Shown piece after piece: positions 16,541-61,571 of a stretch of 64,000 bases of DNA; the stretch's first letter is position 1; each line of letters begins with the position of its first letter. A program made the translations under genes and the position numbers. The notes beneath the pieces were generated by a model, which was not told the origin of the DNA, did no database searches, and saw only the letters and a list, made by a program, of their open reading frames with translations. Source of the DNA: Macrostomum lignano (lineage: Eukaryota). The DNA lies in NCBI GenBank assembly GCA_002269645.1, contig NIVC01002441.1:62001-126000 (forward strand), read 5' to 3'.

Positions 16541-17109
16541 TATCTCAATTGGAGTTCCATCAAAAGCTCAGCCATTCTACCTTAATTACCCGAACTGTTG
16601 GCATCAAACTCCCTTCGCTCATGCTACAGCAAGGTTTCCATGGTCTTATTTTTCGGCAGCTCAGGCAGTCTGGCTTCAATTATGCAGCTGTTCCTCGGAG
16701 TGGCACGCACAATGCACGCCAATACTATATTTATAATACATTTATTTACATGACTGTTTTTTTATATTGAAATGCATTGTTTCTCACCGCCGTGTTGTTT
16801 CCTGGGGTCGCGCGAGTCGCATTACAGTCGCAATAATAATGTTTTGAGCACAGCAGAGAGATTAAATCCGCCACCCCAGCCAAGAAATGTAATGCTCTAT
16901 GCAATGCTCAACTGACAATGGCGCAGATTAGGCAGAGAAAAATTCCAAATTCTTTGATTAGAACCCTGGATTGGGAAAGCTTGAAGAAAATAGAACACGA
17001 CAGAATGAACTTTTAGTTCTAAACTGTTTTGCCAACTGAATAACTAATAATTTGCGTGTGATATTTTGTTTAAAAAAGGTGCAGGAGATCGCGAATGCCG
17101 ATAAATGAC

Positions 17110-23712: not shown

Positions 23713-26700
23713 TCAGGCCTCTGTTTGGGGCAGCAGTCCCGCTGAAGCGCACATCAGCACCGCAGTCTCCAGCCGCTGCAGCGCCGCCGGTTCCCGCAAT
23801 TCAGCCGCCTTCCAGGTGGCCACCGACACCTGGAGCAGCTCGGCCAGCAGGCGGCGCAACTCATCGCTGTCGTCCTCCCCGACGTACGGCCGTCTGCCGC
23901 ATCGCCGCAGCAGGCCAGCAACCCGCGGCTCCAGCAGGAGGCCCAGCCGAAGGCAGTCGAAACGCCTTGACGGCAGGCTGCACTTCAGCCAGGCCAAGCA
24001 GCGGTTCAGCAGCGCCGGGAACGGCTCGGCGGGCAGGCAGGCGGTGCACAGGAAGGCCAGGTCGGACACCGTCGACGACAATGGGCCACCAGTCGACACC
24101 GGAGCCAGATTGTCTAACAGGTCGCAGAGCAGCCGGCCGATCGCGGCCAGGGCGGCCGGGCGGAGCCGAAGCAGGTCGGCCAAGCGGCCGAACAGCCGCC
24201 GGTCGGGTCCGGGGCCAGCTGGGTCGGCCAGCAGGCGAGCCAGGCGGCCGGCGGCGACCGGACACTCTGGCCGGGCAAGGAAGGCCAGCCAGGCGGCGCG
24301 AGAGACGCCGGCAGGAAGTCGCCGGCCGCGGAGAGGCGAGGCCAGTTCGCAGTCGAGGACATCGTCAAGCAGGCGGTCGGCGCCGCTGTCGCCAGCGAGG
24401 CGGCGCAGGACGGCGTCAGCGAAGGCGGAGCGGCGAAGCCGGCAGAGGCCGCGGGCAGCGAATAGCGCGGACTCCGGCTGAGCGGCGCAGGCAGCAACGA
24501 ATCGGCGGTCGGCTTCGGCGACTTGCCCGACGGTTGCGGCCAGCTGATTGGCAGCGGAGTGCAGCCTGGACAGCGACAGTTCCGGAGAGGCCTCCAGCAG
24601 GTCGGCAGGGTCTCGGCGAAGACGGTCAGCCAAGTAGAGCCAGTAGCCTAGGCCGGTAAGCGCGGCAAAGAGGCCGAACTCGGCCAGCTTGCTGTCCGGT
24701 GCCGGTCGGCCGACGCCACCGAGGACCGTCGGACTGCTGCCGAAGTTGTCCCAGTTTTCAAACTCGACGTCCTCGAAATGATCGACATCGCGATCTTCTG
24801 CGCCAAGGCCAACTCCGCCGCTGACAACCTCGATAACACCCTGGGAGAGCAGCCATAGTATTATAATGAGCGGAGCTTGAGATGAAGGGAATGGATATTG
24901 TTAGAGTCTGGGATGAGGACCGGCATCAGTTCTTAGGGAGTCCAGTAGGATCAGGGATGGGGAGCTGGCATCAGTGCTTAGGGAGTCCAGTAGGATCAGG
25001 GATGGGGAGCTGGCATCAGTGCTTAGGGAGTCCAGTAGGATCAGGGATGGGGAGCTGGCATCAGTGCTTAGGGAGTCCAGTAGGATCAGGGATGGCGAGC
25101 TGGCATCAGTTCTTAGGGAGTCCAGTAGGATCAGGGATGGGGAGCTGGCATCTGTGCTTAGGGAGTCGAGTAGGATCAGGGATGGCGAGCTGGCATCAGT
25201 GCTTAGGGAGTCCAGTGGGATCAGGGATGAGGACCGGCATCAGTTCTTAGGGAGTCCAGTAGGATCAGGGATGGGGAGCTGGCATCAGTGCTTAGGGAGT
25301 CCAGTAGGATCAGGGATGGGGAGCTGGCATCAGTGCTTAGGGAGTCCAGTAGGATCAGGGATGGGGAGCTGGCATCAGTGCTTAGGGAGTCCAGTAGGAT
25401 CAGGGATGGCGAGCTGGCATCAGTTCTTAGGGAGTCCAGTAGGATCAGGGATGGGGAGCTGGCATCTGTGCTTAGGGAGTCGAGTAGGATCAGGGATGGC
25501 GAGCTGGCATCAGTGCTTAGGGAGTCCAGTGGGATCAGGGATGGGGAGCTGGCATCAGTGCTTAGGGAGTCCAGTAGGATCAGGGATGGGGAGCTGGCAT
25601 CAGTGCTTAGGGAGTCCAGTGGGATCAGGGATGGGGAGCTGGCATCAGTGCTTAGGGAGTCCAGTGGGATCAGGGATGGGGAGCTGGCATCAGTGCTTAG
25701 GGAGTCGAGTAGGATCAGGGATGGCGAGCTGGCATCAGTGCTTAGGGAGTCCAGTAGGATCAGGGATGGGGAGCTGGCATCAGTGCTTAGGGAGTCGAGT
25801 AGGATCAGGGATGGGGAGCTGGCATCAGTGCTTAGGGAGTCCAGTGGGATCAGGGATGGGGAGCTGGCATCAGTGCTTAGGGAGTCCAGTGGGATCAGGG
25901 ATGGGGAGCTGGCATCAGTGCTTAGGGAGTCCAGTGGGATCAGGGATGGGGAGCTGGCATCAGTGCTTAGGGAGTCCAGTGGGATCAGGGATGGGGAGCT
26001 GGCATCAGTGCTTAGGGAGTCCAGTGGGATCAGGGATGGGGAACTGGAATCTAATGGGTCTAGTATAAGGAAGTGGCAGCTCTCTCTTAGGAATCGAGAA
26101 GTTATGGAATTGAGCAGGAACTGGACTAGGTAATTAAGAACCCCGGAGAACATAATAAAGCATACAATTTCACCTCATACGCATCGGCAGAGTGAGCACA
26201 GAGCCGCTGCCGCAGCTGCACATCCTCCAGCAGCAAATCCAAGCAGCGCAGTGGCCGTCGCCGGTCGGGATGCCGCGCGCACACGGACTCGAGCAGCAGG
26301 CCGGCTGAGAGCAGCAGTCGCTGAGGCTCCGCTGTCAGCTCCCGCAGGCGGCTCTCGCAGCCAAAGAAAACGTCGAGAGCGCCGGCTCTCGCCGCGTGGC
26401 TCAACGCCGCTTCGGCCAGTCGGACATCGCTGCGGTCCAGCGCCTCGGCCAGCGCGGCAAACGGTTGCAGCCGGAAGTCAAACCCAGCTCGCACCGGCAG
26501 CTGCAGCTCCATCAGTTGCCAGCAGTTGGCAACCAGCGAGTCCTCATCTACTTGGCCGCTGGCCAGCTCCTCCAGCCAGCCGAGGCAGGCAGCCCGCATT
26601 CGACACTCAGCGTATGCCAGCCAGACCCGCGCCAGATGGCCGCCGGTGAACTCGGCGACATCCGCCGGGTTTGTCGCGCTCGAGACAGCTTCGGCTGCGT

Positions 26701-29700
26701 CGGCAGCCGCGTCAACGAAGCCGCTCAGCGCCAGCCGCAGACGCGGCAGCAGCCGCCTGCCCTGGCAGTGGCCGGGCGCCCAGGCTAGCAGGCGGCAGAG
26801 GCAGCTGGTCAGCAGTTCGGCCTCGCCAGTCCGCTCCGAAGCTGGCGACAGCGGAAGCAGGCGAAGCCGCCCAGTCAGGGAGAGCAGGCTGCAGGCCGGG
26901 GACGGACCGCTCGCCGCAGCGCCCTGCATGTAGAGATGGTTGGGATCTTTTGCCTGTGCATTCGATCGATAGTCCTCATCAGAGCACAAAGCGTCCGAAA
27001 TCCTACAAAACCGCCTGAGGATCTGGTAGGTTGCGGGTGGCCCAGCAACTGAGGATTTGGCAGGGTGCCAGTGGCCCAGCAACTGAGGATCTGGCAGGGT
27101 GCCAGTGGCCCAGCAACTGAGGATCTGGCAGGGTGCCAGTGGCCCAGCAACTGGGGATCCGGCAGGGTGCCAGTGGCCCAGCAACTGAGGATCTGGCAGG
27201 GTGCCAGTGGCCCAGCAACTGGGGATCCGGCAGGGTGCCAGTGGCCCAGCAACTGAGGATCTGGCATGGTTGGGTTGGACTCAAGTACAGAGCTCCACAA
27301 TGGCAGCAGGTGTAAGTGAGCACAGACCAGCTCACCTCAGCCGCAGCTTGGTTAGCTTCGCAGTCAAGCTGTCTCAGCAGCGTCCTGGCATCCTTGGCGA
27401 ACGTAGGCGGCACCGGGGGCTCGGCCAGCTGCAGCAGGCGGTCCAGCAGCGAGATCGCCAGGCAGAGCCGCTCCGGGCAGCGAGACAGAGCGGCCCGCCT
27501 GGCCAGGCACCAGCGCAGCAGCTGAATGCACGAATTGAACACCCAGACAGCGGCGCAGGCGGGCGATTCCGCCTCTAACAGTTTATCGGCAGTTGTCATG
27601 GCAACCAACTGGGCCGAGGCCAGCCCGTCAGCCGAGGCTGCATCGGTGCCTCCACATGTGACAAACTCAATTAGGACAGGTGTTACTTCGTCAACTCCAG
27701 CCAAACGAAGCTGTCCGGAGCAGTCGGACAATCCGGCGGCGGCCAACTCGGCCAGGTCGGCGTCGAGTTGGCCGCGGCGTGGTCGGAGGCCTTGCAAAAA
27801 TATAGGGATGGAGAGGATGGAGGGATCTAGGGTGAATGGGGAGGCTACGGGATGGTAATCTGGTGTGGGAAGGCTATGGTATGGTATCTGGTGTGGGGAG
27901 GCTAGCTACGGAATGGTATCTGGTGTGGGAAGGCTACGGGATGGTATCTGGTGTGGGGAGGCTACGGGATGATATCTGGTGTGGGGAGGCTACAGGATGG
28001 TAATCTGATGTGGGAAGGTTATGGTATGGTATCTGGTGTGGGAAGGCTACGGGATGGTATCTGGTGTGGGGAGGCTAGCTACGGGATGGTATCTGGTGTG
28101 GGGAGGCTACAGGATGGTAATCTGATGTGGGAAGGCTACGGGATGGTATCTGGTGTGGGGACGCTATGGGATGGTATCTGGTGTGGGGAGGCTACGGGAT
28201 GGTATTTGGTGTGGGGAGGCTACGGGATGGTATCTGGTGTGGGGAGGCTATGGGATGGTACCTGGTGTGGGGAGGCTACGGGATGGTATTTGGTGTGGGG
28301 AGGCTACGGGATGGTATCTGGTGTGGGGAGGCTACGGGATGGTATTTGGTGTGGGGAGGCTACGGGATGGTATCTGGTGTGGGGAGGCTATGGGATGGTA
28401 CCTGGTGTGGGGAGGCTACGGGATGGTATTTGGTGTGGGGAGGCTACGGGATGGTATCTGGTGTGGGGAGGCTACGGGATGGTATTTGATGTGGGGAGGC
28501 TACGGGATGGTATCTGTGTGGGGAGGCTACGGGATGGTATCTGGTGTGGGGAGGCTACGGGATGGTATCTGGTGTGGGAAGGCTTTGGGATGGTATCTGG
28601 TGTGGGAAGGCTACGGGATGGTATCTGGTGTGGGGAGGCTAGCTACGGGATGGTATCTGGTGTGGGGAGGCTACGGGATGGTATCTGGTGTGGGGAGGCT
28701 ACGGGATGGTATCTGGTGTGGGAAGGCTACGGGATGGTATTTGGTGTGGGGAGGCTACAGGATGGTATCTGGTGTGGGGAGGCTACGGGATGGTATCTGG
28801 TCTGGGGAGGCTACGGGATGGTATCTGGTGTGGGAAGGCTACGGGATGGTATTTGGTGTGGGGAGGCTACGGGATGGTATCTGGTGTGGGGAGGCTACGG
28901 GATGGTATCTGGTGTGAGGAGGCTACGGGATGGTATCTGGTGTGGGCAATACTGAATACGGCAAATCAAGCTCGGTCTCACCTTCGCGCAGCACAGGCCA
29001 GACTCCTGAGGCCAGCTGTCGCCGGCTCGCGCCGCGCCGAGCAGAGAGGCTGGCCAGCTCCACAGCGCGCAGGCGCAGGCAGTGCTGAGTGCGCGGCAGC
29101 CGAAGCTGCTCAGCCAAGAAAGCCAGAATGCCGGTCAGCGGGTCGTCAACGTCGTCTGCTCCGGGATCGTCGCCGATGCAGCCGCCACTGCCGAAGCCGT
29201 GGTTGTCGATTTGCGCTGACCATGTGGTAAAATTTTATGAGCTTTTAGCATCTTGGATGCCAATTCAGAATTTCAGGAATGTGAAAAGGGAATTTCGAAA
29301 TGTAAGATGTTGATCTGGGATGCCAATTCTGAAATCTGGAATGCCAATTCTGAAATCTGGGATGCCAATTCTGAAATCTGGGATGCCAATTCCGAAATCT
29401 GGGATGCCAATTCTGAAATCTGGGATGCCAATTCCGTTATCTGGGATGCCAATTCCGAAATCTGGGATGCCAATTCTGAAATCTGGGATGCCAAATCCGA
29501 AATCTGGGATGCCAAATCCGAAATCTGGGATGCCAATTCCGAAATCTGGAATGCCGATTCCGAAATCTGGGATGCCAATTCCGAAATCTAGAATGCCAAT
29601 TCTGAAATCTAGAATGCCCATTCCGAAATCTAGAATGCCAATTCCGAAATCTAGAATGCCAATTCTGAAATCTGGGATGCCAATTCCGTTATCTGGGATG

Positions 29701-31704
29701 CCAATTCCGAAATCTAGAATGCCAATTCTGAAATCTGGGATGCCAATTCCGAAATCTAGAATGCCAATTCTGAAATCTAGAATGCCAATTCTGAAATCTA
29801 GAATGCCCATTCCGAAATCTAGAATGCCAATTCCGAAATCTAGAATGCCAATTCTGAAATCTGGGATGCCAATTCCGTTATCTGGGATGCCAATTCCGAA
29901 ATCTAGAATGCCAATTCTGAAATCTGGGATGCCAATTCCGAAATCTAGAATGCCAATTCTGAAATCTAGAATGCCCATTCCGAAATCTAGAATGCCAATT
30001 CCGAAATCTAGAATGCCAATTCTGAAATCTGGGATGCCAATTCCGTTATCTGGGATGCCAATTCCGAAATCTAGAATGCCAATTCTGAAATCTGGGATGC
30101 CAATTCCGAAATCTAGAATGCCAATTCTGAAATCTAGAATGCCAACTCTGAAATCTAGAATGCCAATTCTGAAATCTAGAATGCCAACTCTGAAATCTGG
30201 GATGCCAATTCCGAAATCTAGAATGCCAATTCCGAAATCTAGAATGCCAATTCTGAAATCTAGAATGCCAATTCCGAAATCTAGAATGCCAATTCTGAAA
30301 TCTGGGATGCCAATTCTGAAATCTGGGATGCCAAATCCGAAATCTGGGATGCCAATTCCGAAATCTGGAATGCCGATTCCGAAATCTGGGATGCCAATTC
30401 CGAAGTCTGGAATGCCGATTCCGAAATCTGAGATGCCAATTCCGAAATCTGGAATGCCGATTCTGAAATCTCGGATGCCAATTCCGAAATCTAGAATGCA
30501 TGTGGCGTCAGGATTCTCCGTTGCTTGAGTCCCCAACCCCAGGAACCTGAGAGTTCCACTCACAAAAGCTTTTAAACTGGCAACATTCATCCATTTCTAC
30601 TGTTCTTTGAACTTTTATGTCTTTTAACTCTTAGTTATTAAGTAGCTAATGTTACTAAATATGAGAAATATTCGTTCCCGTAACCATATCCATACCTGTA
30701 TGTTTTGTCTGAAAACCTCCGAATCTGTAGCTTACAAGCCGCGAAGCCTCTCTATCCGGCCCTCGGGTCCTTTGAAACTCACACTAGCAATCTGGCCTGC
30801 TCAAGGTTTGTGTCTTTTCCCAGCTCTCTTCACTGTAAAATAATCTCCTCTCTTTTCTCTCCTCTTCTCTTCTCCTTTATACCTTCGTCTCTAATTTCTC
30901 CTATCTCTCCTCTCTCTTCGCTATTCCGTCTTCTCTCTTCCCTCCGCTGACCCGCAGTAAGGCGCTAGATTCTCTATCTGGCTCTTGAAGTAATAAAGCT
31001 TGCCGACCCCTGGCATAGCCGTATCCTTAGCTATGGCGGAACTCTCTACCAAAATAATGTTTGGTTAACGAGGCCTCACCATCATCGTCCTCCCCGGAGG
31101 TGGCCGCTGCCTCGCAGCCCGCAACTCGGTGGCCACCCAGCGGCGCAGTAACGGCCGCCTCGGCCAGGGCCAGCAGCTGGATGGCGAACCGGACGCTGGG
31201 CGCCGACCTCAGCAGGCGCAGAGCCGCAGTCAGCAGAACTTGCCGACTACCAAGCGGACAGCGGCGAGCCAAACCCGGCGATTTCAGCAGCCAGGCGGAG
31301 GCGAATTTCACCGCCATGAGGGCCGCTGGGCCGCCGCCGCCGGGCAGCGCAGAGGTCCAGTGAAGAAACGCGTGGATGAGGTCTGCCTGGCTGGACATGA
31401 GGCCGGCCAGGGCTGCGAACAGGCTGCTCTCCAGGTGGCTGGCCGAGTTGGCCACGGCGTCGACGGCCTGGGTGGCGGCGGCAAGCAGGGCGTCCAGTAG
31501 GCCGAGGTCGGCCAGGAAGCAGTCGGCAGTGCCGGGCTGGGCTGCCAACTGCTTCAGTTCGAGAGCGGCCTCGAGGCGCTGCTCGGCAGAGGCGCAGGGG
31601 TCGGTCAGCTCGCAGCACAGCTGGTGCAGATGGTCGGCTAGAAGGTCTTTCTGTGCAATGCAGTCTTGCATTGCAAAATCGGGAGAGGCAAACTCCCAGC
31701 CCAT
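23713..31704 (-). CDS. Uncharacterised 1096-aa Leu/Ala/Arg-rich, probably alpha-solenoid (ARM/HEAT-like) protein; exons 31704-31080, 29215-28982, 27790-27336, 27022-26174, 24840-23713
   Basis: ATG in GCCATGG context. Exon lengths 625+234+455+849+1128=3291 nt. Intron phases 1,1,0,0, all with GT donors (GTGAGG, GTGAGA, GTGAGC, GTGAAA) and AG acceptors. No internal stops; GC-rich codons. Fold assignment is inference from composition. Confidence 0.85.
24905..26045. repeat. 45-bp intronic minisatellite (GGGATGGGGAGCTGGCATCAGTGCTTAGGGAGTCCAGTAGGATCA) in intron 4 of gene 2
   Basis: About 25 copies; 15-aa periodic ORFs. Confidence 0.95.
27015..27266. repeat. 34-bp minisatellite (CTGAGGATCTGGCAGGGTGCCAGTGGCCCAGCAA) whose first unit overlaps the intron 3/exon 4 junction of gene 2
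   Basis: About 7.4 copies with exact 34-bp period; first unit includes 8 exonic nt (27015-27022). Confidence 0.95.
27835..28946. repeat. 28-bp G-rich intronic minisatellite (GGGATGGTATCTGGTGTGGGGAGGCTAC) in intron 2 of gene 2
   Basis: About 39 copies. Confidence 0.95.
29315..30497. repeat. 21-bp intronic minisatellite (GATGCCAATTCYGAAATCTRG) in intron 1 of gene 2
   Basis: About 56 copies; 7-aa periodic ORFs. Confidence 0.95.
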
Positions 31705-34700
31705 GGCGTAATTTGGGGAATCCTGTAAGGGCAAATTAAAAAAGGTCTTTCTATTGAAACAGTGGTCTATGGATTGTCAAAATTATTATAAATAAGTTAA
31801 ATGCTTTCATTGCTACTTGATATATAATCTCTACAAATGGGTAAGTTAGCTTCTTAATTAAATAAACCGCTTAAAATGGCTGTTGAAGCAATACTATAAG
31901 TGACAGATCTTGATTTTAAACTTAAAGTGGGGGCCACTCTGACTCCTAAACAACCCTATGCATTTGCTACTGTACTATAATACTTAAACTTTTAGAGCTA
32001 ATTCAAAGTTAATATTTATTGCATAAACTCATTTTTTATTATTATAACATAATCATATTTAATTTAATACACTCCATTTTTAAGGCTCTAAAAACAATAA
32101 ATAGGTCAGTTATATAAATCTAATATTAAAATTATTTGATATATATCATATATAAGTCAATACTTTTTAAGTTTCTATAAATATAAGGTGGTAGGGCCTT
32201 ACTGATTAATAAGTAGCCAAACCCAAATATAAACACAAAAATAACAAAAATTCCATATGAGACAAGACAAAATATATTCTTATGTATTACTTTTGTGATT
32301 TCTTTTATCAATAAAAAATAGCTAAAATAGTTGGCCTTTGAGACAGTGCATTAATAATAGTATGATACTGTACGATAGTGCTAATAGTAACTCATTTTCT
32401 TAGAAACTTTAGTTCAAATCTGCGCTAAAAAGAAATTACTAGTATTTTTGTTTAAATGTGGTGAGTTGCAAAAATATTTTTGCGATTAATATTTGTTATA
32501 AACTATAATGATTTCTACTATAAATAGAAGCTCTGAGCAGGGCAAGAGGACCAACTCGGACAACTCGCCCAACTCGTTTAACTTGTTCATTTGTGTGCTT
32601 TAGCAAAAGCTAAAATCTGACAAGAAAATTGTTCAGTGTCTTATTCATTTCTTAGAGTGGAAGCCTCAACTTGGGAGTAATATTAAGATCCGCTAAAAGC
32701 GAGAAGTTGCCTCAGGGCAGTAATAGTAAATTCGCCTCAGGGCAGGAGAACCGCCTCAGAGCGAGAGAAAATTGCCTCAGGGCAAGGAAAATATAAAGCT
32801 GTGACCCTCTGATCCAGGGAACACCTAGGACTGAGAGATATAAGAGTAGACAGTGCCAATAGACTGCTCAGGCAAAAGGTACAGTACATGTACAACCGCT
32901 ACCATTAGATAAGTAGACGCTATCAATATAAGTAGATAAGTAGACGCTACCAATATTATTAGTACATTTATGCAAAAAGTACATTAAGTAGAAAGACAGA
33001 ATTAACAGGCCTGCAACAACTTTGGTGGCAGAGAGTAAAGTTAAACAAAAGAATAAATAAGAGCCCTGGGACAGCTTTTGGTGGCATTTAGTGGGATTCT
33101 CAGTGTACAGGGAAGAGCACTGTAACAGCTTGGTAACAACAGTGGGATATTATTAAGAAGGAAGCAAAACCCCTGTGACAACTTTGGTGGCATAACGGTG
33201 GAATTCTCATAGAGAGCCAAAAGGCCTGTGACACCTTTTAAATATTTTTTTGGATTATGTTTTGTTTCAAAAGAATATAAAAATACACTATATAATATTA
33301 AGTAAAGCCATTACTAGGCATTAGCAACAATACTAATAATTTAATTTCTAAAATAACTAATTAGTATTATATTTTGAGTGTGCTAATTTGCTATTATTTA
33401 GTTGTTTTAAATATTTATTTAGTTTGATTATTCCTTTCTGTCTGGAGATAGATTTTTTAACTATACTATACTATACACTACAACATATTTAAATCTTAAT
33501 ATCATTTCAGAGCAAGTGTAACTAGGTTTTCCAGATAATTTTTACAGATAAACTTCTTAATGTTCATTAAATAGACAACAATCACCTTTCAACACATTTT
33601 TAAATAAGTTTTTGTTTTTAACTGTAAACTGTTATACTATTGGCTCATATCATATTGGGGCCCTAGATAGATACATGCAAATCATGTAGAGTAAATGTTT
33701 TATAAAAATATTAAATTAACTGGATCTCACACACAACACAACAAATTTTTACTTAGCTCAACCCAGAGACATTACGTCGTTACCGCTAAACTAAACCAAG
33801 CATTCACCGCATTGAAATGCGAGGGAAAAAGTGAATTGACCGACATTCGGCGATAATTTTGAGTTTGCACAAACAGTACTAAAATATAACAAATGTATTA
33901 TAAGTACCAGGTACCTTAAAATTTCAAAGGACTTAAGTCACTTTCTTTCTTAAAGTACTTCACAAATTTATCTCTGAAGAGAAGTTTTAGCCTCAAAAAG
34001 TAAATAAATATTATGATTAAAAAGCGACTGACAATTTAACAGAATTATATCTAAATGATCTTTCAAGATCAGGGTCGTTCTCAAAGTTTCGACGTAAGCA
34101 GTTAAGCAAATTTTTTTTAATCCGCCTTAAATTGAGGGCTTATTTTTTCATGTGGCTCGACAATACTATTAAAAATAAACGTTTATGATTATAAACAGTC
34201 ATTTTTATTTAAAATTCTTGAGTAAATGTCAAGAGTCTGCGCATCTTCGTTTTTTAATTTATTTTTTGGATTATCGCTTTATAGCGTAATACCCATTTTA
34301 TAGATACAATATTTTTCTCACGTGGTCGTATCAAAAAGTAAAACTATCAAATATTATTTATATCTTGATTTCTTACAACCTGAAAGCCATTAAAACCTTT
34401 GGCTTGTTGAATTGACGTTTTTATTTTGACTTTTCTAGAAGCGTGACACTGTATGGGATGAAAAAAACTAACTTTCAGTTCATTCGTTCAGCTGATAGAA
34501 TCAAAAGAGAGGTGTGTTTTCATCTGTTATTAAGAAAGATGGTCACAATTTACAATATAGTATCAAATTATTCAGTGTCATTTAAAATTGTAAGAATTAT
34601 GTTAATTAAATCACGAGTTTTTAGTTTTTCAATAGCACAAAATTAACCTAACAAATACAGATTAATCTGTCTACAATAAAACAAGCAGTACCAGAGTAGT

Positions 34701-35328
34701 TCTGTTTCAAAGCCTTCATCTGTGGCTTGAAAAAAAGTACTGCCTCTATGCCCCTAGTAAAGTATTAAAAAATTCTCAGCACATTGTTAGGTTTTTGGAA
34801 GGTATTTTTGTACATCTAAAATAAACTTGGCCATTTAAATGCCCAATCTGTTGATGAAAAACAACAGAATTTTACGCTTTGTACTTAAATTTATACTGAT
34901 CTAATTTAAACTGGGTGTTGTTAGTTGTTTTTACTCAAAAGAAGATTTTTAGACTGATTTTTTAATATTTTATAGTACATTTTAAGTAGTCTGAAACAAA
35001 AATTAATATGCTAAGAAGCAGGAAAGAATAAAAGATGAATAAAAATGATGCCGTGCATTTTTATAGAAATACCATGAGAAAACAGTCTTGCATCTATGTA
35101 TGAAATGATAGTTATAATTATGAAACTAATTTTCTAGAGTTTACTAAAATAACATTTCTATGCTTCTTACTTTCTAATTAGATCGATTATGCATGATTAG
35201 TGATCTCAATTTTTAGGTAATAGATTCGGACTTTTGTTACATACCAACGACAAAAAGAAAATAGAAACATTTTTTAAAATTACTACTGGCAATGGTAAAA
35301 ATAGTACATCAGAAACGAATAATTATGC

Positions 35329-35696
35329 CAGGGACGTCGCCATGGATTCTATGGTTGAAGGGGGGGACGAAGCCAAGAATTCAGCATGTACACGACTAAA
35401 TTTCTGCTGTATATTATTTTCGGAATGTGTTGTCAACTATCATTTAAGCGCCATAGGCACTCGTTTTAGTGCCTCAGCTGCACCACTTCAGCACTGCTGG
35501 CATTCATTTTAGAACCGCTGGCACACATTTTAGAACCACAGGATCCATTTTCGCGCCGCAGACACTATTTTTGTCGTCCTGAAGCAACATTATTTTTTTC
35601 CATAACAGGTCAACGAAGGAATGCATGGTGGGGGACAAAGCATTTTACTGGGGGCTTGTCCCCCTGCACTGCCCCCCCCCGGTGGCGACGCTACTG
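35329..35696. mobile_element. Candidate hAT-like MITE nested in the 5' region of the Sola element
   Basis: Imperfect inverted ends CAGGGACGTCGCCA / TGGCGACGCTACTG, GC-rich subtermini in AT-rich context; no exact 8-bp TSD. Confidence 0.4.
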
Positions 35697-35821
35697 ATAA
35701 CGCCACATCAAGTATTAAAAATTTATCCACATCAGCTCACTGCTTGAAGCTTAAACGTAGATTTATGTCAATAAGTCTAAAAAGTTAAATCTCAAAACCT
35801 ATACATTTATCAAATAAATAA

Positions 35822-38137
35822 ATGAATTCCGTTCACTTTCAGCTCAAAAGCAACTGCTTCTTTAGTATGCCATCAAAGAAGCAGCGCGCTCGCGAGTCTT
35901 ATAAAAAATGGGAGAATAAAAAGCGTTCCGCTGATCTTGAGGGATTCAAAGAGCAGAATCGATTGAGACAAAAAAAGTTCTATTACAAACAAAAAAGTAT
36001 CATGGAATCGGACGCAGTAAAAGACCAGAGAAGACGTCAGATTAAGCCTAATTCAAGGAATGATACTAAACAGATTAAGAGCACTGCGAATGAGCGATTG
36101 AGTCGGTCTGAGGCTGCTAAGCAGCGGGAGATGAGAAAGAAAAAGGAAGAAATTTCGCGTTTGCTTGAACGGTTGAAGAAGGTGGAAGAAGAAAATAAAA
36201 AGCTGAAGCAGCAGAAGCGGCGAAGATCTAAGGCTGCTGTTTCTAGACAAGGTGCCTCTGACGATTCAGATGCCGCCGTCAAGCATATTGTGGATAGCGT
36301 CGTAGCAGTGAAACGAAAGAAGCACATGCAAGGCGTAGTTCGGCGCATTTGTGAGACTGCTGAGACTCCTGGAGTAAGAAAAGAGGTGCTCCGGCGATTG
36401 CACTGTTCCGGGAAAATTTTGAAGCCGCTTCCACCGCCAAAAGTGAAAAAGTTGCCAATGGCTGTTTCGGATTTTTTGTGTGAGGACCAAAACTCACGGG
36501 CGACTGCTGGAAGAAAAGAGACCGTGCTCAGAGGGTCGGAAAAGAAGCAGAAACGCTATCTTCTTTACGGAATGCAGATTTTGTACGAAAAATTTCTGTC
36601 TGAACACCCGACTGTAAAATGTAGCAGGGCTTCATTTTACCGTTACAAGCCGCCACATGTGCTTCAACCAAAAGTAGGCAATCGAGAACAGTGCCTGTGC
36701 CCACTGTGCACCAACGTCGACCTTTTGGTTGAAGGAATTTGTAAAGCAAAGCTAATAGATTCAACAGCTGACAAGCATGATCTTCTACGGAAGATTGTTT
36801 GCTCAGACGAGTCGTACAACTGTCTGAACAATATATGCCAGAAGTGCACTCAGCTTTCTCCTATCAAAGCTGGCGCCGCTGCTAATCAGCCAATTGTTGT
36901 GTACGACAAGTGGAAGCGTAGGACTGATGCGAATGGCATGGAGGTTGTAAAGAAAACGATGAACTGTGAGTTTGCCATAGCAAAACTTTTGAAACATTTG
37001 CGCAAATATGGCGCCCACTTCCTGCGCCTCCGACATCAATTTCGCGCTATTCGTCAGCTGAAGGACAATCTGGGCGAGCACCACCTGGTGCTACACATTG
37101 ATTTTAGCGAAGCGTATGGCGCAAAGTACCACCGCGAGACGCAACCAGCCCATTTTGGAGACCGCGGGCAGGTTACAATTCACCAGGGTGTCGCCTACGG
37201 GGTGTGTGAACGGCGAGGTGTGTCATTTGCTTCTCTGTCGTTGGACCGCAACAAGAAGGCGGAAGCAATTGTTGCACACCTGCTACCTGTACTGAAGCAC
37301 TTTTTATCCGTCTTAGGTGAAGTTGAGCGAGTCACCATCATTTCCGACTCCCCCAGCAGCCAATACCGCAACAGAATGACAATTTTTTTGTTTGATCGAC
37401 TGTTGCGGCGAATTGGCATCCATCGCTGGCAGTGGATCTTCACCGAGGCTGGCCACGGCAAGGGTGCCGCTGACGGTGTGGGAGCGGCCATTAAGCGGCG
37501 TTGCGACAACCGGGTGTCTACAGGTGAGCAGAGGCAGGTGGTCACGGTGCAGGACATGATGGAGGCAATGATGATCGGTGGCAGTAATGAAGAGAAAAAG
37601 ATTTTGCTTTTCGAGGTTACAACCAGTGACATCGAGGAGTTTGGAAATGTGCTGCAGATGGTGAACCTGTCTACAATGCCGGGCATTGCCAACTGCCACC
37701 ACGTCTGCCGAGTTGATGAAAGCGGCATCTTGTATCGGGAGCTGGTCTGTCTCTGCACAAAAGCTAATGATTACTGTCGGTGCCACAACGCTAGACTGTG
37801 GCAACCGCTGGCTTTGCCACCGATGCCAAGACAGCAGACAGTGCTTTCGGTGAAAGATGCAGCTGGTGCCGCAAGGTGTTCAACTGGCAAGCGTGTCAGG
37901 GGTCAAGAGCGAGGTCGGGGTCATGGTAAGTCGGGGACTGAGGTCGAGCGCTGCAGTTCTACCATCTGTATTCAGCCTGCAAGTTTGAGAATCCAGTGGA
38001 TTCAATGCGATGGCTGTGATGCCTGGCATCATTGTGAATGTGCTGGCTTTCCACCAAAGAGCAACCTGCCACAAAACTATTATTGCTCACCTGATTGCGC
38101 CTTCGACCTCACACAGGCTGAGATGAGGGAACTTTGA
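35822..38137 (+). CDS. Sola2-like DDD transposase with Cys-rich pre-catalytic region and C-terminal PHD finger (771 aa, intronless)
   Basis: Motifs HIDFSEAY (D427), ISDSPSSQYRN (D509), HGKGAADGVG (D551); upstream CLCPLC...C...C...CQKC cluster; C-terminal CSSTIC...WIQCDGCDAWHHCECAG...YYCSPDC; ORF uninterrupted. Met16 (35867) is an alternative start. Confidence 0.88.
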   Translation: MNSVHFQLKSNCFFSMPSKKQRARESYKKWENKKRSADLEGFKEQNRLRQKKFYYKQKSIMESDAVKDQRRRQIKPNSRNDTKQIKSTANERLSRSEAAKQREMRKKKEEISRLLERLKKVEEENKKLKQQKRRRSKAAVSRQGASDDSDAAVKHIVDSVVAVKRKKHMQGVVRRICETAETPGVRKEVLRRLHCSGKILKPLPPPKVKKLPMAVSDFLCEDQNSRATAGRKETVLRGSEKKQKRYLLYGMQILYEKFLSEHPTVKCSRASFYRYKPPHVLQPKVGNREQCLCPLCTNVDLLVEGICKAKLIDSTADKHDLLRKIVCSDESYNCLNNICQKCTQLSPIKAGAAANQPIVVYDKWKRRTDANGMEVVKKTMNCEFAIAKLLKHLRKYGAHFLRLRHQFRAIRQLKDNLGEHHLVLHIDFSEAYGAKYHRETQPAHFGDRGQVTIHQGVAYGVCERRGVSFASLSLDRNKKAEAIVAHLLPVLKHFLSVLGEVERVTIISDSPSSQYRNRMTIFLFDRLLRRIGIHRWQWIFTEAGHGKGAADGVGAAIKRRCDNRVSTGEQRQVVTVQDMMEAMMIGGSNEEKKILLFEVTTSDIEEFGNVLQMVNLSTMPGIANCHHVCRVDESGILYRELVCLCTKANDYCRCHNARLWQPLALPPMPRQQTVLSVKDAAGAARCSTGKRVRGQERGRGHGKSGTEVERCSSTICIQPASLRIQWIQCDGCDAWHHCECAGFPPKSNLPQNYYCSPDCAFDLTQAEMREL

Positions 38138-41100
38138 ACATGAACGAACTCAACTCACATGGGAATCAATTTTTAGTTTTTAATGCTATCAATATTTAGC
38201 TTTTTTATTACGAGCAAAGCATCGATCCATGACTTAGGTTATAGAAAGTTTTCTTTAGGTGGGTTTGAAAGACACCACTTGGTTTTTAATGAAGACACCA
38301 CACAAAAGTTGAAAACTTTATGCACCACACACTAACTATAATTGGAAAGATCTTAATTAATCTCTACCGGAACTTACTCGGTACCGGCACCGAACTGGAT
38401 AACATGCATGGGCGGGGGTGGAGAAAAACGATCTTGGAATCATTTTGACAGCAATGCTATGTACATCAAAGATCAGAACAGACAAGGGGTGAAGAAGAGA
38501 GAGAGAAATTTTCTTCAACCAGTCTGTAGTCAGTCAGTTTGTCCCCAGTCGGGGCAGTACAGAAGCTCAGCGCTTATGGTCTCACAAAAAACTAAGTCTA
38601 GTATTGGGTTATAGCGATAGATCCCAGTCAGCCGGCCATCTGGTGTGACTACAGCTGACCTCTTTAACCCATGGGGATATGCCATTGCAGTAAGGTCAAG
38701 GTCCACATGCTAAAGCACGCGGCCCCTTAGTGCTTTTACAGATCCATGCTAAGGAAAGTCACGGCTACAAAGAAGCACCCAAAGAAACTCTTATCTATCA
38801 CTTCTATAACAAAAATTTGGGCGTGTAGACATCAAACAGTTCTAAGACCCTACAGTGCTACATGTACAATTTATAAGTCACCCGAGACGACAGGCTTTAC
38901 TACGTGAGATGCCCCAAATGCCAAATTCTCACGTTAAAAAACCTAAAACAATGTAGGAGTCAACACACAATACTAAAAAAATAATTTAGAGCATATAATG
39001 AAAATAGCTACTGTAGTCTTTTAAGCATACAGTGGATCGATTCCTGAATCTCGTGTAGGTCTTTTAAAGGACAGTCATCAAGGCATACAGTGTATTATTT
39101 ATGCAAAAGTAAACTATATTTTCTGAATTATCTTCAAAACCTGACTTCAAATCTGAAGTAAAATAAAGCTCATTATATTAGCTCCATATTAAATAAGCTA
39201 ACATTTTTATGTATTTTTGAAGTTTCTAAATATTCAATGCTGTTGAAGCTATGCAAAGCCTTCTCAAAATTTGTTTCGAAGTCCTAATAAGTACTGGCAA
39301 ATCAGTGGTTTGTTTCATATTCTTGTATCAAGGAATTGGATTCGAATATGTGCTTCATTTTACAAATGAGATTTTTCCACTGGTGCTTGTTATTTTTTTC
39401 TTTTTAAATTTAGCTTATTGAAACTAAATGGTGAATGGTTGAACTTCAAAGAAAAACAGTTTTTTAATTATTTTCATACAGAAAAATTGTTCTAATATTA
39501 CAGTAAATCATTTTGTTATTGTTATTGTATTGTTATACCCATTTTAGATTACTTTTATATGCTGTATGTTGTTGCATTATTATCATTGCTTTGATAAATT
39601 TCACAGATGCATGTATTTTTTCCAAATTACTCTAAAACCAAAATAAGGTATGTGATCTTACTTTGCATGCATTTAACCAATCCAACAGCAATTTCAATGA
39701 AAGATTAAAGTTAGAATAGAAATACCGATATTTACCCTAAACTGCCTTGTTTCTGACTTTCACACTACATGTGCTAGTAAGCTATCAGATAACTTCTAAA
39801 TTCTAACATCTCTACCTGGTGAGCTTGCAATTTATGCGCTCCATGAATATTACATACTTTTAGAAATTGAACAGAGTTCGCATTTTAAAGTTACATCAAA
39901 AACAAATTTAAATGAATTTTCTGAAGAAAACGGAGAAAGTAGTATTCAAAATAATGATGATCTCATTTACATTTTCTGAATTTTTAAGAACTTGAAGACA
40001 AACAAGTTTAACAATAACGATGTCCGAAAAGAACTTTTTTCTTTGAAGTTAAAAACGTGTGGTGTAACTGTTTTTTAATAGTAAAATAAAATCAAATATG
40101 ACTATTTAAGTGTGTTTATCTTTGTAACTTAATAAAAAAATAAATAGACAAAATATTACTTTTAGGTGTTTCATATGCATTTTAATTAGATATTGCAGGA
40201 CAACAACTTTGTCGTCTATACATCCTTACGGTAAAATAAACAAACACGCTTATTTATTGAATATTCAAGGATTTTGTGGTTTAAAAAACCTATATGGGTT
40301 GTGGTGCCACAAATGAAAATTTTAAAGCCAAAAGAATAATATTTCATGCTTTTTAATTTTTTGTTCATAAATTCAAGCTAAGATTTGAGAACGACCCATC
40401 AGTGTGTACTTACGAGTATGCAAAGGTAGAATTTTTTCATTGGAATGGTCAGTTTATTAAACTTTATATCTTTTTTAAGATAAATTAAATACATCTGAAA
40501 GCTGGGACTACATATCACGTGAAGAAGTCCTTGATCATGAGTGAAGACAGCCCTGTTGACACGGATAAAGCCAAATTGAACATGATCGCTGACCGCCTTT
40601 AAGGCTGTTGCGAACAAGTTCTGTGTTCAAAGATCATGTTCGCAAGGCCTACTAAAGCCAACTAATATATTCAATTGGCTGGTAAAATTGCCGTCGATTT
40701 AAAATGAGCTAGGGGCCTAGACTATTATAGTTTTAGGCTAGGGTAAGGTTAAGTACAAGAGTCGTTACAGTTTAATACTAAGCCTTTTCATTATTGTTAA
40801 GCATTAGCAAGTAGTTAATCTTTACTAGGCTTAGACACAACTGGACTAATTGACTAGGCCCTAATAGGCCTAGTTCAAAAAGCTACCTTTGATATAAAGT
40901 AACTAGGCCTATTTCATTGTTAGAATTGAATTGCACTGTAATATATAGTAAATATAGTCCAATTGACTTGTTCTGGTCTACTTTAGAATAATGGCAGGGA
41001 TATATTATCTTTAGTTAAAAGGCTAGGATAGGCTATTAATGACTAGATATAAGTTGATAAGTTCTTTCTAATCTATATCTGGGCTTCTTGCTATTTTGGT

Positions 41101-41989: not shown

Positions 41990-43400
41990 GCTACCCTTCC
42001 TATTCAACCCCTCAGGCTTCCTCTTATTCTACCTCTCCCATTCTACCCCTCCCAGACTACCCCTCCCATTCTACCCTTCCCAGGCAGCCCTCCCATTCTA
42101 CCCCTCCCATTCTACCCTTCTCAGGCTACCCTTCCCAGGCAGCCTTCCCATTCTACCCCTCCCATTCTACCCCTCCCAGGCTACCTTTCCTAGGCTACCC
42201 TTCCCAGGCTACCCTTCCCAGGCTACCCTTCCCAGGCTACCCTTCCCAGGCTACCTCTCCCATGCTACCCTTCCCAGGCAGCCCTCTCATTCTACCCTTC
42301 CCATTCTACCCTTCCCATTCTACCCCTCCCAGGCTACCCTTCCCATTCTACCCCTCACAGGCTACCCTTCCCAGGCTACCCTTCCCAGGCTAACCCTTCC
42401 CAGGCTACCTCTCCTATTCTACCCTTCCCAGGCTACCTCTCCCATTCTACCCTTCCCAGGCTACCCTTCCCAGGCTACCCTTCCCAGGCTAACCCTTCCC
42501 ATTCTACCCTTCCCATTCTACCCTTCCCAGGCTACCCTTCCCATTCTACCCCTCCCAGGCTACCCTTCCCAGGCTACCCTTCCCAGGCTACCCTTCCCAG
42601 GCTCCCCTCCCAGGCTACCCTTCCCAGGCTAGCCCTCCCAGGATAACCATCCGAGGATACCCTTCCCAGTGAGCTCTCAGCTCTCCCAAGCTACCCCGTC
42701 CAGTTTACCCCTCCCACTATACTCTTCCCAAGCTACTTCTCCTATGCAACCCTCCCAGGCTACCCCTGCTACTCTACCCCTCTCAGGCTACCCCTTCCAT
42801 CACAACCTCTTCCAGGCTCTCTCCCAGGCTACCCTTCCTACTCAAACCATCAGGCTCCTCTTTCCTACTCTTCCCCTTTTACTCTACACCTCCCAGGCGA
42901 ACCTTCCCAGGCAGCCCTCCCAGCCTACCCACCCCTCCCAGGCAGCCCTCCCAGCGTACCCCTCCCAGCTTACCCATCCCAGGCAGCCCTCCCTGCCTAC
43001 CCCTCCCAGGCAGCCCTCCTAGCGTACCCCTCCCATCCTACCCCTCCCAGACAGCCCTCTCAGCCTACCCACCCCTCCCAGGCAGCCCTCCCAGCGTACC
43101 CCTCCCAGCTTACCCCTCCCAGGCAGCCCTCCCAGCCTACCCCTCCCAGCCTACCCCTCCCAGCCTACCCCTCCCAGCCTTCCCCTCCCAGCCTACCCCT
43201 CCCAGGCAGCCCTCCCAGCCTACCCCTCCCAGCCTACCCCTCCCAGCCTACCCCTCCCAGCCTACCCCTCCCAGCCTACCCCTCCCAGCCTACCCCTCCC
43301 AGCCTACCCCTCCTAGGCAGCGCTCCGAGACTACCCCTCCCAGGCAGCGCTCCGAGACTACCCCTCCTACTCTACCCCTCCCAGGAAACCACTTCCAGGC
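41990..43400. repeat. C-rich ~14-bp minisatellite (CTACCCTTCCCAGG / CTACCCCTCCCAGC) in left arm
   Basis: Direct periodicity; reverse complement of the array at 50225-51900. Confidence 0.9.
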
Positions 43401-43675
43401 TATCTCCCACTGTGCCCCTGTGTACTGTCTCCATTTATGTTCGAAACTGAGAAGATTGTTTCGTTTTGGTATTATTTAAAAAGATAATGCATCATTATTT
43501 ACTTCAGACGCTTCACTCTCATTATTTCAGGTGCGTACATGCGAGTCAGCTAACGCTGACGCCGCACTTAGTATTCGGCTTTCCAACGGGGAACTGTGCG
43601 TTTACGAAAGCCATTTGGGATTTGGGATGCCAGAAAAGAAATTCTATTTTGCAAGGATCCGATGAATGCTGCCGC

Positions 43676-44910
43676 TTCGGCTGCAGTGACCACCGGCTCA
43701 AGCGGAGGACGATCGCAGGACTGTTTGCTGCCTGCCACTTCGGCTGCAGTGACCACCGGCTCAAGCGGAGGACGATCGCAGGACTGTTTGCTGCCTGCCG
43801 CTTGCTGCAGTGACCACCGGCTCAAGCGGAGGACGATCGCAGGACTTTTTGCTGCCTGCCACTTCGGCTGCAGTGACCACCGGCTCAAGCGGAGGACGAT
43901 CGCAGGACTTTTTGCTGCCTGCCACTTCGGCTGCAGTGACCACCGGCTCAAGCGGAGGAAGATCGCAGGACTGTTTGCTGCCTGCCACTTCGGCTGCAGT
44001 GACCACCGGCTCAAGCGGAGGAAGATCGCAGGACTGTTTGCTGCCTGCCACTTCGTCTGCAGTGACCACCGGCTCAAGCGGAGGACGATCGCAGGACTTT
44101 TTGCTGCCTGCCGCTTCGGCTGCAGTGACCACCGGCTCAAGCGGAGGAAGATCGCAGGACTGTTTGCTGCCTGCCACTTCGTCTGCAGTGACCACCGGCT
44201 CAAGCGGAGGACGATCGCAGGACTGTTTGCTGCCTGCCGCTTGCTGCAGTGACCACCGGCTCAAGCGGAGGACGATCGCAGGACTTTTTGCTGCCTGCCA
44301 CTTCGGCTGCAGTGACCACCGGCTCAAGCGGAGGACGATCGCAGGACTTTTTGCTGCCTGCCACTTCGGCTGCAGTGACCACCGGCTCAAGCGGAGGAAG
44401 ATCGCAGGACTGTTTGCTGCCTGCCACTTCGGCTGCAGTGACCACCGGCTCAAGCGGAGGACGATCGCAGGACTGTTTGCTGCCTGCCACTTCGTCTGCA
44501 GTGACCACCGGCTCAAGCGGAGGACGATCGCAGGACTTTTTGCTGCCTGCCGCTTCGGCTGCAGTGACCACCGGCTCAAGCGGAGGAAGATCGCAGGACT
44601 GTTTGCTGCCTGCCACTTCGTCTGCAGTGACCACCGGCTCAAGCGGAGGACGATCGCAGGACTTTTTGCTGCCTGCCGCTTCGGCTGCAGTGACCACCGG
44701 CTCAAGCGGAGGACGATCGCAGGACTGTTTGCTGCCTGCCACTTCGGCTGCAGTGACCACCGGCTCAAGCGGAGGACGATCGCAGGACTTTTTGCTGCCT
44801 GCCACTTCGGCTGCAGTGACCACCGGCTCAAGCGGAGGACGATCGCAGGACTGTTTGCTGCCTGCCACTTCGGCTGCAGTGACGGCCGGCTCAAGCGGAG
44901 GAAGATCGCT
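43676..44910. repeat. 63-bp GC-rich tandem repeat with a 439-bp (7-unit) higher-order duplication
   Basis: Unit CTGCAGTGACCACCGGCTCAAGCGGAGGACGATCGCAGGACTGTTTGCTGCCTGCCACTTCGG; a 61-bp variant recurs at 43810 and 44249. Confidence 0.95.
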
Positions 44911-49664: not shown

Positions 49665-49930
49665 CGAGCTGCAGCAAGCGGCAGGCAGCAAACAGTCCTG
49701 CGATCGTCCTCCGCTTGAGCCGGTGGTCACTGCAGCAAGCGGCAGGCAGCAAACAGTCCTGCGATCTTCCTCCGCTTGAGCCGGTGGTCACTGCAGCAAG
49801 CGGCAGGCAGCAAACAGTCCTGCGATCGTCCTCCGCTTGAGCCGGTGGTCACTGCAGCCGAAGTGGCAGGCAGCAAACAGTCACTGCGATCGTCCTCCGC
49901 TTGAGCCGGTGGTCACTGCAGCCGAAGCGG
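49665..49930. repeat. 63/61-bp repeat (about 4 copies) in right arm
   Basis: Reverse complement of the 43676-44910 unit. Confidence 0.9.
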
Positions 49931-50224
49931 CAGCATTCATCGGATCCTTGCAAAATAGAATTTCTTTTCTGGCATCCCAAATCCCAAATGGCTTTCATAA
50001 ACGCACAGTTCCCCGTTGGAAAGCCGAATACTAAGTGCGGCGTCAGCGTTAGCTGACTCGCATGTACGCACCAGAAATAATGAGAGTGAAGCGTCTGAAG
50101 TAAATAATGATGCATTATCTTTTTAAATAATACCAAAACGAAACAATCTTCTCAGTTTCGAACATAAATGGAGACAGTACACAGGGGCACAGTGGGAGAT
50201 AGCCTGGAAGTGGTTGCCATGCCA

Positions 50225-51900
50225 TGGAAGGGGTAGCCTGGGAGGAGTAGTCAGGAAGGGGTTTTGGGAGAGGTAGCCTGGGAGGGGTAGAATGGGAGAG
50301 CTGCTTGGGAAGGGTAGCCTGGGAGGGGTAGAATGGGAGAGCTGCCTGGGAAGGGTAGCCTGGGAAAGGTAGCCTGGGAGGGGTAGAATGGGAGGGCTGC
50401 CGGGGAAGGATAGCCAGGAAGGATTGCCTGGAAGGAGTCTGGGAGGGCTGCGGCTGCCTAGGAAGGGTAGCCTGGGAAGGGTAGCCTGGGAGGGCTGCCT
50501 AGGAAGGGTAGCCTGGGAGGGGTAGAATGGGAAGGGTAGCCAGGAAGGATTGACTGGAAGAGGTAGCCTGGGAAGTATAGCCTGGGAAGGGTAGAATCGG
50601 AGAGCTGCCTGGGAAGGGTAGCCTGGGAGGGGTAGAATGGGAGAGCTGCCTGGGAAGGGTAGCCTGGAAAGGGTAGTCAGGAAGGATTGACTGGAAGAGG
50701 TAGCCTGGGAAGGGTAGCCTGGGAGGGGTAGAATGGGAGAGCTGCCTGGGAAGGGTAGCCAGGAAGGATTGACTGGAAGAGGTAGCCTGGGAAGGATAGC
50801 CTGGGAAGGGTAGAATCGGAGAGCTGCCTGGGAAGGGTAGCCTGGGAGGGGTAGAATGGGAGAGCTGCCTGGGAAGGGTAGTCAGGAAGGATTGACTGGA
50901 AGAGGTAGCCTGGGAAGGGTAGCCTGGGAGGGGTAGAATGGGAGAGCTGCCTGGGAAGGGTAGCCAGGAAGGATTGACTGGAAGAGGTAGCCTGGGAAGG
51001 ATAGCCTGGGAAGGGTAGAATGGGAGAGCTGCCTGGGAAGGGTAGCCTGGGAGGGTTAGAATGGGAGAGCTGCCTGGGAAGGGTAGTCAGGAAGGATTGA
51101 CTGGAAGAGGTAGCCTGGGAAGGATAGCCTGGGAGGGGTAGAATGGGAAGGGTAGCCAGGAAGGATTGACTGGAAGAGGTAGCCTGGGAAGGGTAGCCTG
51201 GGAGGGGTAGAATGGGAAGGGTAGCCAGGAAGGATTGACTGGAAGAGGTAGCCTGGGAAGGGTAGCCTGGGAGGGGTAGAATAGGAGAGCTGCCTGGGAA
51301 GGGTAGCCTGGGAAGGGTAGCCTGGGAAGGGTAGCCAGGAAGGATTGACTGGAAGAGGTAGCCTGGGAAGGGTAGCCTGGGAGGGGTAGAATGGGAGAGC
51401 TGCCTGGGAAGGGTAGCCTGGGAAGGGTAGCCAGGAAGGATTGACTGGAAGAGGTAGCCTGGGAAGGATAGCCTGGGAGGGGTAGAATAGGAGAGCTGCC
51501 TGGGAAGGGTAGCCTGGGATGGGTAGCCAGGAAGGATTGACTGGAAGAGGTAGCCTGGGAAGGGTAGCCTAGGAGGGGTAGAAATAGAATGGGAGAGCTG
51601 CCTGGGAAGGGTAGCCTGGGAAGGGTAGCCAGGAAGGATTGACTAGAAGAGGTAGCCTGGGAAAGATAGCCTGGGAGGGGTAGAATGGGAGAGTTGCCTG
51701 GGAAGGGTAGAATGGGAGAGCTGCCTGGGAAAGGTAGCCAGGAAGGATTGCCTGGAAGAGGTAGCCTGGGAGAGGTAGAATGGGAGAGCTGCCTAGGAAG
51801 GGTAGCCAGGAAGGATTGCCTGGGAGAAGTAGCCTAGGAAGGGTAGCCATAGAGAAGTAGCCTAATAGGGCTGTCTGGGAAGGGTAGCAGCCTAGGAGAG
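50225..51900. repeat. G-rich minisatellite (CCTGGGAAGGGTAG modules) in right arm
   Basis: Reverse complement of 41990-43400, with arm-specific module AGGAAGGATTGACTGGAAGAGG. Confidence 0.9.

Positions 51901-58224: not shown

Positions 58225-61571
<3,347 letters not shown>

Follow-up and report, generated by a model that had tools for sequence, protein, structure and literature searches.

A structurally intact and very probably autonomous Sola2 transposon in AT-rich DNA of a flatworm genome

The window analysed here, a stretch of 64 kb of DNA (contig NIVC01002441.1, numbered 1-64000), carries at positions 34072-40397 an element of 6,326 bp, a candidate Sola2 DNA transposon. The surroundings of the element are AT-rich non-coding DNA between minisatellite arrays. 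It possesses one long open reading frame (ORF) for a transposase between two non-coding arms, ends in terminal inverted repeats (TIRs) and is bordered on both sides by a target site duplication (TSD). The features are as follows (aa, amino acids; UTR, untranslated region):

34068-34071, no strand: left TSD copy, ATCA, read from the sequence and the same as 40398-40401
34072-34085, + strand: 5' TIR, GGGTCGTTCTCAAA, 14 bp, perfect, 100% complementary to the 3' TIR
34086-35821, + strand: 5' internal non-coding arm, 1,736 bp, GC 32.4%, presumed promoter and 5' UTR
35822-38137, + strand: transposase ORF, 771 codons plus stop, unbroken (ORF reading)
35832-35842, + strand: splice-acceptor-like ttcactttcag; the gene model P0001 (see below) joins an upstream exon exactly at 35843
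37079-37519, + strand: RNase H-like catalytic core, aa 420-566 (conservation, AlphaFold2, Foldseek, family profile)
37100-37102, + strand: codon of D427, motif HIDFSE
37346-37348, + strand: codon of D509, motif IISDSP
37472-37474, + strand: codon of D551, motif GAADGV
37985-38089, + strand: PHD-like Cys4-His-Cys3 finger, aa 722-756, after an RG-rich linker (sub-threshold Pfam match, relatives)
38138-40383, + strand: 3' internal non-coding arm, 2,246 bp, GC 32.6%
40384-40397, - strand: 3' TIR (TTTGAGAACGACCC on the + strand), exact reverse complement of the 5' TIR
40398-40401, no strand: right TSD copy, ATCA, read from the sequence

Both boundaries of the element can be read directly: the left junction is caag-ATCA-GGGTCGTTCTCAAA (34068-34085), the right one is TTTGAGAACGACCC-ATCA-gtgt (40384-40401), and the joined flanks would read ...tctttcaagATCAgtgtgtactt... 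without the element. Identical 14-bp TIRs and an exact ATCA duplication had been reported in the first-pass annotation of this DNA, and both are borne out. As the base neighbouring the TIR differs between the two ends, the TIR ends at GGG and the TSD is exactly 4 bp long. Further inwards, the TIR similarity runs on imperfectly (17 of the 20 outermost bases match), and in the 64-kb window the 14-mer was found only at the two ends, even with 2 mismatches allowed. When the 3 kb on either side of the ORF were shuffled, a perfect 14-nt inverted repeat appeared in 318 of 3000 shuffles; such a repeat together with identical 4-bp flanks appeared in 4 of 3000 (~0.13%).

The internal arms, described before as about 1.75 kb and 2.26 kb of AT-rich non-coding DNA, agree with this description (the lengths listed above plus TIRs). 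Their GC content (32-33%) resembles that of the flanking DNA (31.6% and 33.5%), the ORF having 49%, and inside the 5' arm it climbs to 0.39-0.44 at 35200-35800. The 5' arm has no ORF longer than 92 aa and the 3' arm none longer than 68 aa. Furthermore, neither arm contains an Rfam family or a tRNA; tandem arrays, direct repeats and subterminal repeats were not found in them, and the 3' arm has no similarity to the remainder of the 64-kb window. With no ORF longer than 92 aa beside the transposase and no Pfam domain in the six frames of 38138-39000 (stops replaced by X), a Fanzor-type passenger gene is excluded.

The ORF is free of stops over its whole length, as had been claimed; its annotated start, however, probably lies 15 codons too far upstream. 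The true start is probably Met16 at 35867, giving a product of 756 aa, because MPSKKQRAR... lines up with the beginning of homologous proteins (MPxKK...) and is found 24 nt past the strong acceptor ttcactttcag. An exact-protein look-up in the assembly index revealed no record of either the 771-aa or the 756-aa product. The transposase is composed of a Lys/Arg-rich helical N-terminus, a conserved Cys-rich region (~aa 215-345), a core with three catalytic aspartates (DDD) and a C-terminal PHD-like finger. All three catalytic residues named in the first-pass annotation are present: in the family alignment D427 is invariant, and D509 and D551 are conserved to at least 90%. An AlphaFold2 model based on a 22-sequence alignment (mean predicted local distance difference test score, pLDDT, of 71.9) is confident over aa 210-660, with pLDDT values of about 80-95 in the core. 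For aa 421-566 it predicts the topology b1-b2-b3-a1-b4-a2-b5-a3, that is, an RNase H-like fold, where D427 ends b1, D509 follows directly past b4 and D551 opens the next helix. The best Foldseek matches in the PDB (herpesvirus terminase nuclease, Argonaute PIWI, P element transposase, Mos1) are all RNase H-fold proteins; a sequence-based search found no solved structure for any relative, and there is none for any Sola transposase. Pfam, which has no Sola model, gave a single match for the ORF, PHD at aa 722-756 (E=0.0039, 17.6 bits), under the 24-bit cutoff. The finger is modelled by AlphaFold2 with low confidence, is kept in the relative P0146 and begins in P0003; as it is conserved in relatives, the read-through ORF is taken to be the real product.

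The window protein differs from 18 of the 91 family-conserved columns, and these differences are traits of its subclade. Wherever its nine closest relatives all agree, the window protein agrees with them. This copy is structurally intact: its TIRs are perfect, the 4-bp TSD is exact, the ORF is open and the DDD triad is in place.

A word-indexed search found 22 relatives of the transposase, and an exhaustive HMMER scan yielded 4,942 clusters (50% identity) at E<=1e-3, 482 of them at E<=1e-30; the family is thus very large. Two profiles, one for the family (window protein and 21 homologues) and one for the subclade (closest relatives only), were compared with one or two references per Sola group. 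The cores of Sola1-1_AP, Sola2-1_HM and Sola3-1_HM were taken from the supplement of Majorek et al. 2014 (PMC3985635), and the Sola2 transposases of Dictyostelium fasciculatum (DFa-2) and Polysphondylium pallidum (PPa-1) from the supplements of Bao and Jurka 2013 (PMC3627910). The following scores were obtained:

Sola2-1_HM: family profile 99.9 bits (full-length, E 4e-32), subclade profile 37.6 bits
Sola2_DFa-2: family profile 20.4 bits, subclade profile 0.1 bits
Sola2_PPa-1: family profile -1.7 bits, subclade profile 5.0 bits
Sola1-1_AP: family profile 10.1 bits, subclade profile 0.9 bits
Sola3-1_HM: family profile -0.7 bits, subclade profile 2.1 bits

Sola1 and Sola3 thus remained at about 10 bits or less. 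In pairwise BLAST the entire Sola2-1_HM core was collinear with the window protein (22% identity, E 4e-4), and nothing meaningful was found for the Sola1 and Sola3 cores. Elements of the little-studied Sola superfamily encode a DDD transposase, are mostly 2-9 kb long and have TIRs of 11-1124 bp and a 4-bp TSD (PMC10741241); a 4-bp TSD is also described for Sola2 (PMC3627910). The window element agrees with the superfamily in its DDD RNase H-like core, 4-bp TSD, TIR length and size. The Sola2 membership proposed in the first-pass annotation is supported by the profile comparison, in which, with one or two references per group, only Sola2 fits.

Sola2-1_HM of Hydra is the Repbase reference for Sola2 (group E.12 in PMC3985635). 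Its core is collinear over all 130 residues and has in common with the window protein the pattern DF[AS]E.Y ... E.Q..H ... H ... [ST]D...QY[KR]N ... W.F....HG, but pairwise identity is only ~22% and the window protein sits in a divergent subclade. This subclade (P0002, P0003, P0143-146 and P0181; 43-58% identical) is marked by the sequence SDSPSSQYRNR, the RG-rich linker and the C-terminal PHD-like finger. A metagenome scan with the subclade alignment gave distant relatives only (27-42% identity), and the search for common termini and TSDs across those contigs was noisy. A further Sola2-like transposase relative, P0022 (1,054 aa, outside the window), bears a Ulp1 protease domain (PF02902), which suggests domain capture within the family.

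The dictyostelid elements DFa-2 and PPa-1 resemble the window element in having a 4-bp TSD and short TIRs (12-22 bp), and the motifs R[SA].FY.[FY].P..V...NR...CP.C, DF.E and HGK..D are common to their transposases and the window protein. However, they are 10-15 kb long, carry a Fanzor1 passenger gene, start with 5'-GAGC and prefer AWWT as target and TSD (PMC3627910), whereas the window element is 6.3 kb long, has no passenger ORF, starts with 5'-GGGTCG and has ATCA as TSD. The dictyostelid first bases, read as GAGCA, are common to D. fasciculatum DFa-2 and L002 (1427-4819), a compact metazoan Sola2 relative of ~3.4 kb with TIRs of ~110 bp (~80% identical) and no intact TSD visible. Two distant Sola2 relatives have short motifs that recur, inverted, in the subterminal regions of both ends: TCACGGACGTTTG in L015 (~88-250 and 3490-3890) and GTCATTAGAGTAACG in L005 (~25-440 and 4030-4410). 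These motifs may be candidate transposase-binding sites; the window element, unlike L005 and L015, has no such repeats.

A second copy is implied by P0001 (UniParc UPI0007A2BD0E), a chimeric gene model of 998 aa from Macrostomum lignano. P0001 and the window protein agree in every residue over aa 8-207 and 341-691 (551 residues), all four junctions of P0001 fall on GT/AG, and its remainder comprises 156 aa upstream and 290 aa downstream including RPB3. The C-terminal part is identical to M. lignano RPB3 A0A1I8J1Z1, translated leader included, save for one skipped exon. The flanking exons of P0001 have no match in the window, which covers 34 kb upstream and 23.6 kb downstream of the element. 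As P0001 is identical to the transposase but fused to an RPB3 that is absent from the window, a second copy with identical protein sequence is implied beside RPB3 at another locus of M. lignano. P0001 is also the basis for assigning the window most probably to M. lignano or a very close relative, with which the extreme minisatellite density of the window and its flatworm-like HSP60 exon (see below) are compatible. The fusion is probably an annotation artefact that arose from a transposon copy upstream of RPB3, and the GT/AG "introns" are best read as artefacts of the gene predictor. Real alternative splicing in P0001 was considered and rejected, GT/AG junctions being expected of any gene predictor and the skipped segment removing a conserved region.

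The transposase would perform both TIR binding and catalysis. It would bind the 14-bp TIRs, excise the element and reinsert it where the target is cut with a 4-bp stagger; the ATCA duplication would have arisen when this cut was repaired. The piggyBac transposase is likewise a cut-and-paste DDD enzyme with an RNase H fold; its TSD is 4 bp long, and its C-terminus forms a cross-brace zinc finger, a Cys-rich PHD-like domain. It uses TTAA as target and excises precisely. This likeness is an analogy only, with no detectable sequence relationship to the window transposase, and to our knowledge neither TTAA-type targeting nor precise excision is known for Sola2.

Taken as a whole, the 6,326-bp element is very probably an autonomous Sola2 DNA transposon of full length in M. 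lignano or a close relative, lying in AT-rich DNA between minisatellites. Because of the perfect ends, the perfect TSD, the open frame and the second copy with identical protein sequence, it is fair to infer that the element inserted recently and that its family is still mobile or was so until very recently, as the first-pass annotation had already suggested. Present-day mobility of this element appears possible, at slightly less than an even chance.

Several observations speak against a complete and active transposon. The arms are several-fold longer than those of the compact relative L002 (~0.6 and 0.3 kb), and their content is unexplained. The first Asp lies in DFSEAY instead of the DFSENY of nearly all relatives. 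Furthermore, P0001 is the sole member of its 90%-identity cluster and has no other close match, so that copy number is apparently low; a scan of metagenome contigs for the TIR plus subterminal pattern gave no match, the 64-kb window contains no other copy or fragment of the element, and the searchable DNA collections, which lack the host genome, yielded no second DNA copy, empty site or MITE derivative. The main rival explanation draws on part of these points and regards the element as a genuine Sola2 that looks intact but is immobile, being catalytically weakened (e.g., N431A), devoid of subterminal sites or silenced by the host. The near-universal Asn replaced by Ala, the missing subterminal repeat motifs of the L005 and L015 type and the seemingly low copy number are all consistent with it. 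However, the relative P0143 has Ala at the same position (DFSQAY), no subclade-invariant residue is lost, the TIRs and TSD are perfect, and a copy with identical protein exists at a different locus; we regard immobility of this kind as rather unlikely.

Alternatively, the P0001 copy could stem from a segmental or whole-genome duplication rather than from transposition and would then provide no evidence of recent mobility. M. lignano has undergone a recent large-scale genome duplication, and the second copy is known at the protein level only. But the exons flanking P0001 are unmatched within 34 kb upstream and 23.6 kb downstream of the window copy, and because the flanks differ we consider such an origin improbable. 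Finally, the element might belong elsewhere (Sola1, Sola3 or an unrelated superfamily) or be a domesticated host gene whose inverted repeats arose by chance. This reading could invoke the mere 22% identity to Sola2-1_HM, the lack of a Sola model in Pfam and termini and TSD (GGG..., ATCA) that differ from those of dictyostelid Sola2 (GAGC..., AWWT), but is most improbable in view of profile scores >35-90 bits higher for Sola2 than for Sola1 and Sola3, the ~0.13% of shuffles with a TIR and 4-bp TSD by chance and the second copy at another locus. A domesticated transposase gene was also considered as such and rejected, perfect TIRs and TSD being present here and a second copy elsewhere.

The first-pass annotation had placed the transposon ~2.4 kb upstream of a gene (gene 2), but this gene was not confirmed and looks like tandem repeats. 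The region ~1.6-4.5 kb downstream of the element consists of minisatellite arrays at 42029-43402 (14-bp unit) and 43669-44909 (63-bp unit), whose stop-free frames gave no credible Pfam domain, and no gene was confirmed there. Across the window (1-64000) there are more than 20 different minisatellite arrays with units of 14-63 bp and up to 67 copies (e.g., 1129-1963, 14472-16545, 24910-26051, 27837-28946, 29313-30499, 43669-44909). Note that such arrays yield stop-free ORFs in several frames, which can be mistaken for genes. The downstream arrays belong to a large inverted structure (42020-44910 / 49670-51890) with two arms of ~2-3 kb in which the same minisatellites recur in reverse orientation; over 335 nt the arms are 99% complementary (43384-43718 vs 49884-50218). 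Its core of ~4.8 kb between the arms has no recognisable gene, and the structure may represent either a long-TIR element or an inverted duplication. Host coding sequence that is clearly conserved was found at just one place in the window, a single large exon of mitochondrial HSP60 at 60840-61562 (- strand; Pfam Cpn60_TCP1, E 4e-35). It is metazoan and flatworm-like; its best database identity is 83%, and no HSP60 of M. lignano was among the hits.

An autonomously active Sola2 in a flatworm amenable to transgenesis, with a conserved PHD-like finger that would steer integration through chromatin marks or transposon-end binding, is a tentative and rather doubtful proposition. If true, a Sola transposase would for the first time become accessible to biochemistry, and the element would be a candidate for a native transgenesis vector. 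In our literature searches no transposition assay was found reported for Sola. One more intact member of a very large family leaves the knowledge of transposons unchanged, and the value of the element is practical: being clean, full-length and delimited by defined ends, it offers a good construct with which a first biochemical study of the superfamily could begin. If the host is M. lignano, an endogenous cut-and-paste vector could supplement the existing methods of transgenesis (PMC8717057).

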